A stretch of 64,000 bases of DNA, taken from contig OZ251224.1 of assembly GCA_965240325.2 (NCBI GenBank), positions 2,666,001-2,730,000 on the forward strand, written 5' to 3'. The DNA is from Rebecca billardiae RCC1528. Taxonomy: Eukaryota > Protista > Haptophyta. Shown in pieces: positions 49,261-59,204 of the stretch. Numbering within the stretch: the first letter of the stretch is position 1; each line of letters opens with the position of its first letter. Under the pieces are notes generated by a model. The model was not told the origin of the DNA, ran no database searches, and was given only the letters and a program-made list of their open reading frames with translations. Made by a program: the position numbers and the translations under genes.

Positions 49261-50718
49261 ATGGACGAAGGCAGCGCCGCGGTGAAGCTGCTTCGGCGCA
49301 AGTCGGCACGGGGTGACGAGCGCGCCACGTACCTCCTGGCTGTTCGCTTCGCGCGTGGGGACGGCGTCGCGCAGAACGAGCGCGAGGCGGCTTGCCTGTA
49401 CCACCTCGCCGCCGAGCGTGGGTTGGCGGATGCTCAGCTCGCGCTTGGCGACGGTTATGATCGGGGCGAGCTTGAACTGGGCCAGGACGTCATCAAGGCA
49501 GTGCACTGGTATCGGCTGGCGGCCGAGCAGGGCAATGCAAATGCACAGTGCAACCTGGGCGTTTGCTGCACGATTGGCAAGGGCGTGCCGCAGGACGTGG
49601 CCGAGGCGGTGCGCTGGTACCGGCTGGCAGCCGAGCAGGGCCTGGCACGGGCGCAGTTCAGCATGGGCGCGTGCTGCGCAAAGGGCGAGGGCGTGCCGCA
49701 GGATATGGCCGAGGCGGCGCGCTGGTATGGTCTGGCAGCCGAGCAGGGCTACACACCCGAAGGCGTGCGCTGCGCGAAGGGCCAGGGCGTGCCGCAGAAT
49801 ACGGCCGAAGCGGCGCGCTTGTTCCGGCTGGGAGCCAAGCAGGGCCACGCATTTGCGCAGTTCAATCTAGGCGTGTGCTGCTCAAAAGGCGAGGGCGTGC
49901 CGCAGGACTGGGCCGAGGCGGCGCGCTGGTACCGGCTGGCGGCCGAGCAGGGCCACGCAGATGCGCAGTTCAACCTGGCCTTGTGCTGCAAGAATGGCGA
50001 GGGCGTGCCGCAGGATGTGGCCGAGGCGGCGCGCTGGTACCGGCTGGCGGCCGAGCAGGGTTACGCACCTGCGCAGTTCAACCTGGGCGTGTGCTGCCGA
50101 AAGGGGAAGGGCGTGCCGCAGAATATGGCCGAGGCTGCGCGCTGGTACCGGCTGGCGGCCGAGCAGGGCTACGCACGGGCGCAGTGCGACCTGGGCTGGT
50201 GCTGCCAGAACGGCGAGGGCGTGCCGCAGGATATGGCCGAGGCGGCGCGCTGGTACCGGCTGGCCGCCGAGCAGGGCGACGCAATTGCGCAGAACAACCT
50301 GGGTTTGTGCTGCGCAAAGGGCGAGGGCGTGCCGCAGGACAGCGCCGAGGCGGCGCGCTGGTACCGGCTGGCTGCTGATGGTGATCAGCCAAACGCTCGT
50401 TTCGCGCTTGGGCTGCTGATGCTGGTAGGCACGGGCGTGAAGCGCGATGTGGTGGAGGGTGCGCGGCTGCTGCGCCGTGGGCACGAGCTCGACAGCACTC
50501 TCGACCCTGGTGAAATGCTCGTCGCCGGGTTTGCTGGGGATCGCGAGGTGGTGTCCAAGTGCTGCCTCGTGTGTGCCAAGACGGACCGTCGCACCTTGAA
50601 GAAGTGCGACCGATGCCACGTGGCGGTGTTCTGCTCGCACGACCACCTGCGGCTGGCGTGGAAGGCGCACAAGCCGTACTGCAACGAGTGGCGGCAGCAG
50701 CCTGGACCCTCAGTATAG
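49261..50718 (+). CDS. Sel1-like repeat (11 units) + C-terminal MYND zinc-finger protein, paralogue A, intronless
   Basis: 36-aa repeats AQFNLGVCCxxGxGVPQDxAEAARWYRLAAEQG. MYND CLVC..KKCDRCHVAVFCSHDHLRLAWKAHKPYC. Start set by homology to paralogue B (MDEGSAAVKLL). Confidence 0.92.
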   Translation: MDEGSAAVKLLRRKSARGDERATYLLAVRFARGDGVAQNEREAACLYHLAAERGLADAQLALGDGYDRGELELGQDVIKAVHWYRLAAEQGNANAQCNLGVCCTIGKGVPQDVAEAVRWYRLAAEQGLARAQFSMGACCAKGEGVPQDMAEAARWYGLAAEQGYTPEGVRCAKGQGVPQNTAEAARLFRLGAKQGHAFAQFNLGVCCSKGEGVPQDWAEAARWYRLAAEQGHADAQFNLALCCKNGEGVPQDVAEAARWYRLAAEQGYAPAQFNLGVCCRKGKGVPQNMAEAARWYRLAAEQGYARAQCDLGWCCQNGEGVPQDMAEAARWYRLAAEQGDAIAQNNLGLCCAKGEGVPQDSAEAARWYRLAADGDQPNARFALGLLMLVGTGVKRDVVEGARLLRRGHELDSTLDPGEMLVAGFAGDREVVSKCCLVCAKTDRRTLKKCDRCHVAVFCSHDHLRLAWKAHKPYCNEWRQQPGPSV

Positions 50719-50719
50719 A

Positions 50720-50898
50720 CCTCTATCTCTCTCTCTCTCTCTAGTCTCTCAGTCTCTCTCTCTCTCTCTCTCTCTCTCTCTCTCTCTCTCTCTCTCTCTC
50801 TCTCTCTCTCTCTCTCTCTCTCTCTCTCTCTCTCTCTCTCTCTCTCTCTCTCTCTCTCTCTCTCTCTCTCTCTCTCTCTCTCTCTCTCTCTCTCTCTC
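50720..50898. repeat. (CT)n microsatellite immediately after the Sel1-MYND A stop codon
   Basis: Direct reading. Confidence 0.97.
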
Positions 50899-51247
50899 AT
50901 CTATCTATCACCGGGTCATAAGAAGACTATGATCGGCTACGCCGATCTTCGGGTAGTAAACAACGAAGTTGAGGGCGCACGGCCCGATAGTGGCTGCTAG
51001 TTGTCGCGTAGTTCTTTCTTCGTCACGAATCACGCAGCTTGTGAGCAGCAGCCGGCTTGTGACGACACGGTCGGACGGTCGGACGGGTGCATGCGCCGAA
51101 TGCAGCCGAGTCACTGGCGAGTCCGACAGCCGGGCGGCGGCGCCGGGGGTGCACGCGAGCTCGCACGCGCGTTGTGTGCGCAGCCGCGCTGCGCGCAGAG
51201 CAGCCACTCAGCGCCGCGCCCGACCACTACGCGAGAAGCCGCTGCGC

Positions 51248-57236: not shown

Positions 57237-57427
57237 GCAGTAGTCTGTGTAGCTAGCACGGAGTCCGGAACATATATCGCCATATATATAGCGAGCGCAG
57301 TAGCCAGTATAGTGCCACGTATACGGCCTGCTGCTGAGCTAGTGCCTGATCATCAGGCAGAGGCGCCGAGCTCAGAGACCGAGAGGCAGCGGGCGAACTG
57401 GACTACTGACGATACATCATCCGAAAA

Positions 57428-57512
57428 CTCTCTCTCTCTCATCTCTCTCTCTCTCTCTCACTCACTCTCTCTCTCTCTCTCTCTCTCTCTCTCTCTCTCT
57501 CGTCTCTCTCTC
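57428..57512. repeat. Imperfect (CT)n microsatellite followed by a (TGA/GAT)-rich tract
   Basis: Direct reading. Confidence 0.9.
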
Positions 57513-57626
57513 TGATGACGATAATGCTGACGATGATGAGTGACGACACTGATATGATGACGACGATGAGGATGAGTGATGAGTGTGCCCGGACGCCTGA
57601 CGATGCCGCGGATGTCAAGTGTACTC

Positions 57627-59204
57627 TTAGGCTGCGGGTCCCTGATGCCGCCACGCGTTGCAGTACGGCTTGTGCGTCTTCCACGCCAGCCGCAGGTGGT
57701 CGTGCGAGCAGAACACCGCCACGTGGCATCGGTCGCACTTCTTCAAGATGCGACGGTCCGTCTTGGCACACACGAGGCAGCACTTGGACACCACCTCGGG
57801 ATCCGCCGCAAACGCGGGGGCGACGAGCACTTTACAGACGTCGAGAGTGCTGTCGAGCTCGTGCCCACGGTGCAGCAGCCGCGCGCCCTCCACCACGTCG
57901 CGCTCCACGCCCTGGCCTACCAGTACTTGCAGTCCAAGCAAGAAATGAGCGCGTGGCTCATCACCGCCAGCAGCCAGCCGATACCAGCGCGCCGCCTCGG
58001 CCAGATCCAGCGGCACGCCCTTGCCAGACTGGTAGCATGTGCCCAGATCGAACTGTGCGGGTGCGTAGCCCTGCTCGGCAGCACGCCGGTACCAGCGCAC
58101 CGCCTCGGCCATGTCCCGCGGCACGCCCTTGCCCTTCTCGCAGCACTTTCCAAGATTGCACTGCGCAGTTGCTTCGCCCTGCTCGGCCGCCAGCCGACAC
58201 CAGCGCACCGCCTCGGCCGTGTCATGCCGCACGCCCTCGCCCTTCAGGGAGCACGCGCCAAGATTGTTCTGCGCGCCTTTGTGGCCCTGCTCGGCAGCCA
58301 GCCGGAACAAGCGCAACGCTTCGGCAGTGTCCTGCGGCACGCCCCTGCCATACTCGTAGCAGCAGCCCAGGTTGAACTGCGCATCTGCGTCACCCTGCTC
58401 GGCTGCCAGTCGGTACCAGCGCACCGCTTCTGCCATATCCTGCAGCATTCCCAGGCCCTGCTCACAGCACACGCCCAGGTTGTGCTGCGCGGGTGCGTGG
58501 CCCTGCTTGGTGGCCATCCGGTACCAGCGCACCGCCTCTGTCTTATCCTGCGGCACGCCCTCGCCCTTCTCGAAGCACACGCCCAGGTTGAACTGCGCAT
58601 CTGCGTGGCCCTGCTCGGCCGCCAGCCGGTAGCAGCGCGCCGCCTCGGCCACATCCTGCGGCGCGCCGTCGCCATTCTCGCAGCACACGCCCAGGTTGAA
58701 CTGCACATCTGCGTCGCCCTGCTCGGCTGCCAGCCGGTACCAGCGCAACGCCTCGGCCATGTCCTGCGGCACGCCCGCGCCCTCCTTGCAGCAGGAGCCT
58801 AGGTTGAACTGCGCATATGCGTAGCCCTGCTCGGCTGCCAGCCGGTACCAGCGCACCGCCTCGGCCATGTCCTGCGGCACGCCCTTGCCAATCGTGCAGC
58901 AACCGCCCAGTTTGCACTGTGCATATGCGTTGCCCTGCTCGGCCGCCAGCCGATACCAGTGCACTACCTTGATGGCGTCCTGGCCCAGTCCAAGCTCGCC
59001 CCGATCATGACCGTCGCCAAGCGCGAGCTGAGCATCCACCAGCCCACGCTCGGCGGCGAGGTGGTACAGGCGCGACGCCTCGCGCTCGTTCCGAGCGACG
59101 CCGTCTCCACGTGCGAAGCGAACAGCCAGGAGGTACGTGGCACGCGCGTCACCCCGTGCCGATCTGCGCTGAAGCAGCTTCACCGCGGCGCTGCCTTCGT
59201 CCAT
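57627..59204 (-). CDS. Sel1-like repeat (12 units) + C-terminal MYND zinc-finger protein, paralogue B, intronless
   Basis: Same architecture as 49261-50718, with near-identical N-cap, C-cap and MYND finger. Confidence 0.92.
   Translation of the reverse strand: MDEGSAAVKLLQRRSARGDARATYLLAVRFARGDGVARNEREASRLYHLAAERGLVDAQLALGDGHDRGELGLGQDAIKVVHWYRLAAEQGNAYAQCKLGGCCTIGKGVPQDMAEAVRWYRLAAEQGYAYAQFNLGSCCKEGAGVPQDMAEALRWYRLAAEQGDADVQFNLGVCCENGDGAPQDVAEAARCYRLAAEQGHADAQFNLGVCFEKGEGVPQDKTEAVRWYRMATKQGHAPAQHNLGVCCEQGLGMLQDMAEAVRWYRLAAEQGDADAQFNLGCCYEYGRGVPQDTAEALRLFRLAAEQGHKGAQNNLGACSLKGEGVRHDTAEAVRWCRLAAEQGEATAQCNLGKCCEKGKGVPRDMAEAVRWYRRAAEQGYAPAQFDLGTCYQSGKGVPLDLAEAARWYRLAAGGDEPRAHFLLGLQVLVGQGVERDVVEGARLLHRGHELDSTLDVCKVLVAPAFAADPEVVSKCCLVCAKTDRRILKKCDRCHVAVFCSHDHLRLAWKTHKPYCNAWRHQGPAA

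Follow-up and report, generated by a model that had tools for sequence, protein, structure and literature searches.

Two members of a large Sel1-repeat/MYND gene family with similar caps and variable repeat arrays in the haptophyte Rebecca billardiae

The window analysed here is a 64,000-nucleotide stretch of the genome of the haptophyte Rebecca billardiae RCC1528 (OZ251224.1, contig 5 of the 72-Mb, 41-contig assembly that was searched, positions 2666001-2730000), and all coordinates below count from its first letter unless a contig is named. The window contains two genes, g1 and g2, each of which encodes an array of Sel1-like repeats followed by a MYND zinc finger. The genes are uninterrupted open reading frames (ORFs) in convergent orientation, with 6.9 kb between them. 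Here we describe the two genes, the family to which they belong, and the selection that acts on their repeats.

Two Sel1-repeat/MYND genes in the window

The features of the two genes are as follows, with the evidence in brackets. HMM stands for hidden Markov model, TRF for Tandem Repeats Finder, AF2 for AlphaFold2, and pLDDT for predicted local distance difference test.

49261-50718, plus strand: g1, intronless Sel1-repeat/MYND gene, 485 residues, 11 units (ORF; ten Pfam Sel1 matches plus zf-MYND; AF2 pLDDT 88.9)
49261-49533, plus strand: g1 N cap, two degenerate Sel1-like units, residues 1-91 (unit HMM; 93% nucleotide identity to g2)
49534-50385, plus strand: g1 array, eight near-consensus 36-residue units, residues 92-375 (TRF, unit HMM, identity matrix)
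49750-49845, plus strand: g1 unit 5, 32 residues (164-195), four helix-A residues gone (alignment, unit HMM, AF2)
50386-50559, plus strand: g1 C-cap unit, degenerate, with linker (unit HMM, cap comparison)
50560-50682, plus strand: g1 MYND zinc finger, His at the sixth ligand position (Pfam, residues 435-474; paralogue and DEAF-1 alignments)
57627-59204, minus strand: g2, intronless Sel1-repeat/MYND gene, 525 residues, 12 units (ORF; eleven Pfam Sel1 matches plus zf-MYND; AF2 pLDDT 90.4; Foldseek)
58932-59204, minus strand: g2 N cap, residues 1-91 (unit HMM, cap comparison with g1)
57960-58931, minus strand: g2 array, nine near-consensus units, residues 92-415 (TRF, unit HMM, identity matrix)
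57783-57959, minus strand: g2 C-cap unit, degenerate, with linker (unit HMM, cap comparison)
57660-57782, minus strand: g2 MYND finger, ligands C476, C479, C490, C493, C499, H503, H511 and C515 (Pfam, paralogue and DEAF-1 alignments)

The Sel1 family of Pfam (PF08238) matches g1 in 10 stretches with 311 bits (E-value 8e-96) and g2 in 11 stretches with 372 bits (5e-115), against a cut-off of 30.7 bits. The zf-MYND family (PF01753) matches them with 28.2 and 28.3 bits, against a cut-off of 22.7. The unit HMM counts two N-cap units, eight array units and one C-cap unit in g1, and two, nine and one in g2. ORFs and unit counts thus agree with a preliminary description of this DNA, made from its letters, which had reported two intronless paralogues with 11 and 12 units. 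The two proteins share 70% identity, and their alignment has one gap of 36 residues and one of four. TRF places the 108-bp tandem arrays at 49506-50372 and 57973-58964 and finds no others in the region. Likewise, the only places in the window that match the family are g1 and g2, with no stand-alone unit cassettes.

Identity between the two genes is distributed unevenly. N-cap units 1-2 are 93% identical in nucleotides and 88% in amino acids, unit 3 of g1 and unit 3 of g2 are 95% identical in nucleotides, and the MYND region is 94-97% identical in nucleotides, consistent with the earlier claim that the first three repeats and the finger are nearly identical. The same had been claimed of the last repeat; however, the last canonical unit is only 73% identical in nucleotides and 67% in amino acids, and the C-cap unit with its linker 83% and 71%. 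No diagonal appears in the unit-by-unit nucleotide matrix of g1 against g2. The third units of the two genes pair up (95%), as do g1 unit 7 and g2 unit 5 (92%), and all remaining cells lie at 69-86%, in accordance with the suggestion that the internal units cannot be paired one to one. In the AF2 model of g1, confidence drops to 56-63 in the shortened unit 5, whose helix A has only seven residues. The shortening may mark the onset of decay of this copy.

Judged by their caps, g1 and g2 are local sister paralogues. In a tree of the concatenated caps they are sisters within a clade made up mostly of contig-5 genes, and each is the nearest relative of the other both in the N cap and in the MYND finger. 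When whole genes are compared, however, g1 is closest to the paralogue L032 and g2 to the paralogue L004. The silent divergence (pS) between g1 and g2 is 0.082 in the N cap versus 0.228 at the scaffold codons of the core in the best collinear alignment. Either a rebuilding of the arrays after duplication or a later homogenisation of the caps would fit this difference.

The MYND finger is predicted from sequence, and its eight zinc-ligand positions are invariant in 33 paralogues. The sixth ligand is His (C499-x3-H503 in g2), where DEAF-1 and the relatives outside this genome have Cys. MYND is a protein-interaction module, and in known cases it binds short proline-rich (PxLxP-type) motifs. Neither a signal peptide nor a membrane segment is found in the g1 and g2 proteins (maximum 19-residue hydropathy 1.1-1.3, hydrophilic N terminus), and the family proteins are probably soluble and intracellular. 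Pfam detects neither an NTPase, TIR or death-fold domain nor an F-box in g1, g2 or the long family members examined. An Arg-Gly-Asp triplet lies in the N cap (g2 residues 17-19, 59148-59156, minus strand); over 33 paralogues, G18 and D19 are invariant and R17 is nearly so.

The family in the genome and its variable columns

A whole-protein search of the genome gives 138 matching places. With the C cap plus MYND as the query, 143 places are found on most contigs, about 130 of them at E-values below 1e-20. The genome therefore holds at least 130 copies with the C cap and MYND finger, so that g1 and g2 are far from its only members; the larger family supposed in the preliminary description is there. 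A dense cluster lies on contig 5 at 2.27-2.73 Mb and includes the window. About 12 copies have short frames or internal stops. The longest of the further members reach 25 Sel1 repeats (1088 residues) with the same caps, and no further Pfam domain is found in the long members, the 1088-residue one included, beyond Sel1/TPR-clan repeats and MYND.

For the analysis of single repeats, we use 550 ungapped canonical units from 67 distinct intact ORFs at 70 loci (2-17 units per gene). For 50% of the units, the closest other unit belongs to a different gene and has a different index; for 36% it belongs to the same gene, and for just 15% it has the same index in a different gene. These shares indicate that intragenic duplication of units and intergenic exchange outweigh positional orthology, as the earlier proposal of repeat shuffling and mosaicism supposed. 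In the pair L059/L066, pS is 0.006 in the caps versus 0.115 in the array. The sequences indicate that the arrays turn over by duplication and loss of units and by exchange between genes, and that they do so faster than the caps diverge.

Variation over the 550 units is concentrated at a few positions of a fixed scaffold, as first described from g1 and g2. Columns 1, 3, 6, 7, 10, 13 and 14 have entropies of 2.4-3.8 bits and columns 16 and 22 of 2.1-2.6 bits, and most remaining columns stay below 0.9 bits. The seven-residue signatures are nearly all different (508 distinct in 550 units), with weak coupling between columns. The residues at the variable columns are restricted: Pro makes up 0.5% and Gly 2.8%, with H, Y, D, N, F and C abundant at columns 1 and 6.

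The predicted fold of the array is an alpha/alpha superhelix. In the AF2 models, columns 2-14 make up helix A and columns 22-34 helix B, and the top Foldseek structures are the Sel1 superhelices 6ok3 and 4bwr (E-values 1e-26 to 1e-29). The motif L8-G9-x-x-Y12 of the unit aligns with L7-G8-x-x-Y11 of the tetratricopeptide repeat (TPR), which sets columns 3, 6, 7, 10, 13 and 14 at TPR positions 2, 5, 6, 9, 12 and 13. In HOP TPR1 and TPR2A these positions make the peptide contacts of the concave face; most also rank as the most variable positions across TPRs generally (PMC1261162). By register and helix assignment, the variable sites would thus lie on one face of helix A, the concave one. This register matches the earlier suggestion that the variable helix-A positions line the groove.

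Part of this pattern is shared with other Sel1 proteins. For comparison, we took 133 unrelated Sel1 proteins, most of them bacterial or metagenomic, with 1238 units in all. Their columns vary alike, with a Spearman coefficient of 0.76 overall and 0.83 within proteins, so the column pattern does not serve as a sign of a diversifying family in the way the preliminary description had taken it. The contrast between scaffold and variable columns is sharper in the family (entropy ratio 4.2 versus 2.3 in the comparator), and the identity of units within proteins is 72% versus 61% in amino acids. At columns 11-12 the comparator has CY in 405 and MY in 411 of the 1238 units, and the family has CC in 192 and CY in 233 of the 550. 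The Cys pair had been described as an unusual replacement of MY; its second Cys (column 12) is indeed a subfamily trait, but the first is common in Sel1 proteins.

Selection at the variable columns

Selection was estimated with the MG94xHKY codon model on the array codons of 10 independent, largely collinear paralogue pairs. With a shared silent rate, the ratio of nonsynonymous to silent rates (omega) is 2.9-3.2 at the variable columns versus 0.39 on the scaffold (likelihood-ratio test statistic (LRT) 139, p 5e-32). When the silent rate of the variable codons is freed, omega is 3.07 and the relative silent rate rho is 1.06 (LRT 49.6), indicating that the variable sites are not mutational hot spots and that selection, not hypermutation, acts on them. 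A class of sites fixed a priori from TPR co-crystal contacts gives omega of 3.08 (p 2e-31). The moderately variable columns behave as if neutral (omega 1.09), and a control set in helix B is under purifying selection (0.21). Omega exceeds 1 in 10 of the 10 pairs, in eight of them significantly when taken singly, and the three youngest pairs pooled give 1.78 (p 0.021). For the dN/dS test proposed in the preliminary description, the groove columns as a class thus give about 3, not 1 or less. The scaffold and the caps are under purifying selection.

Other comparisons are to be read with more care. The window genes against their nearest relatives give omega of 4.9-5.8, on non-orthologous units. 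Counting gives 0.71 at the variable columns for g1 against g2, a value that is uninformative because the aligned units are non-orthologous and the sites saturated. By counting methods, the nonsynonymous proportion pN at the variable columns is 1.8-3.5 times the pooled pS. The per-column pS of Nei and Gojobori is distorted by two-fold NAY codons, which give 0.4-0.6 even at the conserved D21, and the MG94 likelihood model was therefore used instead. The G+C content at third codon positions (GC3) is 0.875 in scaffold codons versus 0.63 in variable codons (units of the 67 genes); the lower value fits recent turnover of the variable codons, given that third positions are driven to G or C in this genome.

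Relatives, surroundings and readings of the family

Outside this genome, word-index searches with the whole protein return only long bacterial or metagenomic Sel1 proteins, all without MYND, and those with the C-terminal region return no MYND-bearing relative. When the C cap plus MYND was searched exhaustively against 1.84 billion representatives, no hit fell below 1e-30 and only nine fell below 1e-10. The best relatives are Sel1 plus MYND proteins from marine data. They include the MMETSP transcript P0135, so one outside relative is expressed. These proteins have the domain order of the window genes; however, they are only 35-45% identical to them in the C cap plus MYND, have a unit identity of 39-58%, carry Cys at the sixth zinc ligand, and have no known expansion. 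One protein, P0134 (L081:906-2378), combines the N-cap motif of the family and a C-terminal MYND with diverged ordinary units (39% identity) and Cys at the sixth ligand; it may represent an unexpanded ancestral form. These comparisons indicate that the Sel1 plus MYND architecture is old, and that the family's expansion and homogenised scaffold, like the His form of the finger, are particular to this lineage. No relative is found in the viral contigs scanned with the C cap plus MYND, and a literature search found no paper on an expanded Sel1/MYND family.

Described proteins resemble the family in parts. For some F-box families of plants, Sel1 or zf-MYND domains are listed (PMC4340835), and an annotation "HCP-like with MYND" is quoted in PMC7325899. 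Such proteins have Sel1 repeats followed by a C-terminal MYND, as the window genes do, but the latter lack the N-terminal F-box by Pfam. Ordinary Sel1 adaptors (bacterial HcpC, EsiB/c5321 4bwr, O. formigenes 6ok3, Legionella LpnE and LceB; eukaryotic SEL1L/Hrd3) share the repeat, the predicted superhelix (template-modelling scores 0.74-0.77 and 35-36% identity to 6ok3 and 4bwr) and the variable columns. Unlike the family, with its at least 130 paralogues and omega above 1, they are single genes or small families without MYND.

In fungal NOD-like receptors (NLRs), namely the WD40 repeats of HET-E/D/R and the TPR and ANK NLRs of Podospora, solenoid units are kept similar by reshuffling within and between paralogues, repeat number varies, and positive selection falls on a few concave-face positions (Dyrka et al. 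2014, PMC4986451). The family resembles them in all these respects, its concave face being assigned by register. It differs in that it has no NACHT/NB-ARC and no N-terminal effector domain, its repeats are 36-residue Sel1 units rather than 42-residue TPR, ANK or WD repeats, and its output module would be the MYND finger. The fungal threshold is more than 85% internal identity over at least 100 residues (PMC4986451), and the family mean is 72% in amino acids; in nucleotides, the internal units of the two window genes are 82% and 77% identical. The NB-ARC-TPR and LRR-ROCO proteins of Ectocarpus are candidate receptors that are lineage-specific and have shuffled repeats (Zambounis et al. 2012, PMC3341825). 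They too are an algal expansion of repeat proteins proposed as recognition molecules, but they carry one repeat per exon, shuffle exons and have an NTPase or GTPase domain, whereas the arrays of the window are intronless and come with MYND only. The family therefore resembles the fungal and Ectocarpus systems in evolutionary mode and belongs to neither, because the NTPase is absent, the identity lies below the fungal 85% and the arrays are not built from exons. The analogies drawn in the preliminary description hold to that extent; the one with lamprey variable lymphocyte receptors (VLRs) does not, the genes being complete germline ORFs.

The surroundings of the two genes include the following features.

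49201-49260, plus strand: conserved leader of about 60 nucleotides directly 5' of the g1 ATG, of the contig-5-type subfamily
59205-59264, minus strand: conserved leader of about 60 nucleotides directly 5' of the g2 ATG
53317-54699, minus strand: calcium-dependent protein kinase (CDPK-type) gene between g1 and g2, a single ORF with Pkinase and a pair of EF-hands
54951-57236, plus strand: ORF of 761 residues with weak similarity to the lamin-tail domain (29 bits against a Pfam cut-off of 34)

The leader can be aligned at 14 of 16 contig-5-type loci and ends CAG/ATG. It is probably non-coding, a 5' untranslated region (UTR) or core promoter, because its indel lengths are not divisible by three. 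The two loci cease to be homologous about 40-60 nucleotides 5' of the ATG and at the stop codon. A dispersed repeat lies 5' of g1 in two copies (46344-46734 and 47782-48174); copies adjoin L031 (91-93% identity) and, more weakly, L057 and L010. This repeat adjoins just three of about 78 other family loci and has no systematic link to the family. Carriage of the genes by a transposon is rejected, the homology being confined to the gene and its short leader and the upstream repeat not being family-linked. Retroposition is unsupported, since g1 and g2 share no 3' UTR.

The window is GC-rich (58-79% per 2 kb). A (CT)88 run at 50721-50898 begins three bases past the g1 stop codon, and a (CT)42 run at 57428-57513 lies 114 bases past the g2 stop, in the opposite sense relative to g2. 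The very GC-rich stretch between g1 and the kinase gene contains a 418-bp tandem duplication (51243-52093, 2.0 copies, 97% matches), followed by a (TA)46 run at 52992-53084. The best relative of the kinase is an MMETSP transcript with 55% identity.

We consider it probable that the family is a germline-diversified set of soluble ligand-binding Sel1/MYND adaptors. The protein plan comprises an N cap, 2-25 near-consensus Sel1-like repeats, a C cap and a MYND finger. Each paralogue would bind a different protein or peptide ligand in its solenoid groove, and the invariant finger would tether that ligand to one common partner or complex. The diversity would be germline and paralogue-based, not somatic. 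Several observations weigh against this reading. The pattern of variable columns, taken alone, is generic to Sel1 arrays and proves nothing. The concave-face placement rests on helix assignment and motif register, not on coordinates. The two youngest, truly collinear pairs have omega of 1.6-1.8 and are singly not significant; omega climbs with divergence, as unit orthology is lost. The high scaffold GC3 of 0.875 means that codon bias may keep the silent rate low and so raise omega, and the comparisons are between paralogues prone to gene conversion. Omega in the caps is 0.57-0.64, which together with the short unit of g1 suggests that some copies may be decaying. These same signs (variable columns shared with unrelated Sel1 proteins, the modest values of the two youngest pairs and their growth with divergence, the scaffold GC3 and cap omega, the truncated copies and those with stops) fit a live rival, in which the groove sites are merely unconstrained, the family expanded by neutral birth and death, and omega above 1 is an artefact of silent rates depressed by codon bias, of saturation or of non-orthologous unit alignment. 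Indeed, the trend with divergence and the GC3 of 0.875 indicate that part of the excess may reflect constrained silent sites and lost unit orthology. However, the three youngest pairs pooled still give 1.78, the variable codons have the same silent rate as the scaffold and omega is still 3.07, the moderately variable columns at 1.09 show what neutrality looks like in these data, and the restricted alphabets (few Pro and Gly, biased columns 1 and 6) show that the sites are not free. We regard relaxed constraint as unlikely. The estimates point to omega above 1 at the variable columns, roughly 2-3, and not to a precise value.

On the adaptor reading, the ligands may be self or non-self. If the proteins were intracellular sensors of viral or bacterial proteins, with an arms race at the groove and a MYND finger that relays binding to a defence output, then omega of about 3 at the groove, arrays of 2-25 units, reshuffled units and birth and death with truncated copies would be as expected, and these traits resemble those of fungal NLR repeats (PMC4986451) and of Ectocarpus NB-ARC-TPR and LRR-ROCO proteins (PMC3341825). 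By analogy with those systems an immune role is possible. Yet an NTPase switch and executioner domains such as TIR or a death fold are absent from the members examined, the viral contigs scanned hold no relatives, and diversifying selection also occurs in systems that are not immune. In addition, we know of no role for MYND as an immune signalling domain, and on balance we doubt that the family is such a repertoire. Somatic assembly of the lamprey VLR type, in which flanking unit cassettes complete an incomplete germline gene, shares with the family only the layout of constant caps and variable core. It is highly improbable, given that g1, g2 and the 67 sampled paralogues are complete ORFs and that the 108-bp arrays of the region and the family matches of the window are both confined to g1 and g2.

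In plants, animals, fungi and brown algae, innate recognition is typified by fast-diversifying families of solenoid repeats. For unicellular marine algae, which are hosts of giant viruses, there is to our knowledge next to no information on such systems. The family offers a concrete and tractable candidate, with a simple two-module protein, one invariant putative output finger usable as bait, and six or seven defined candidate specificity positions per repeat. More than 100 germline Sel1-solenoid sensors of viral or bacterial proteins, joined by a shared MYND finger to one common response, are a speculative picture that we regard as unlikely; if it is true, the family would be an NTPase-less innate recognition system of new architecture. 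If the ligands are endogenous, it would still be an unusually clean natural Sel1 design of scaffold plus variable positions, useful for repeat-protein engineering.

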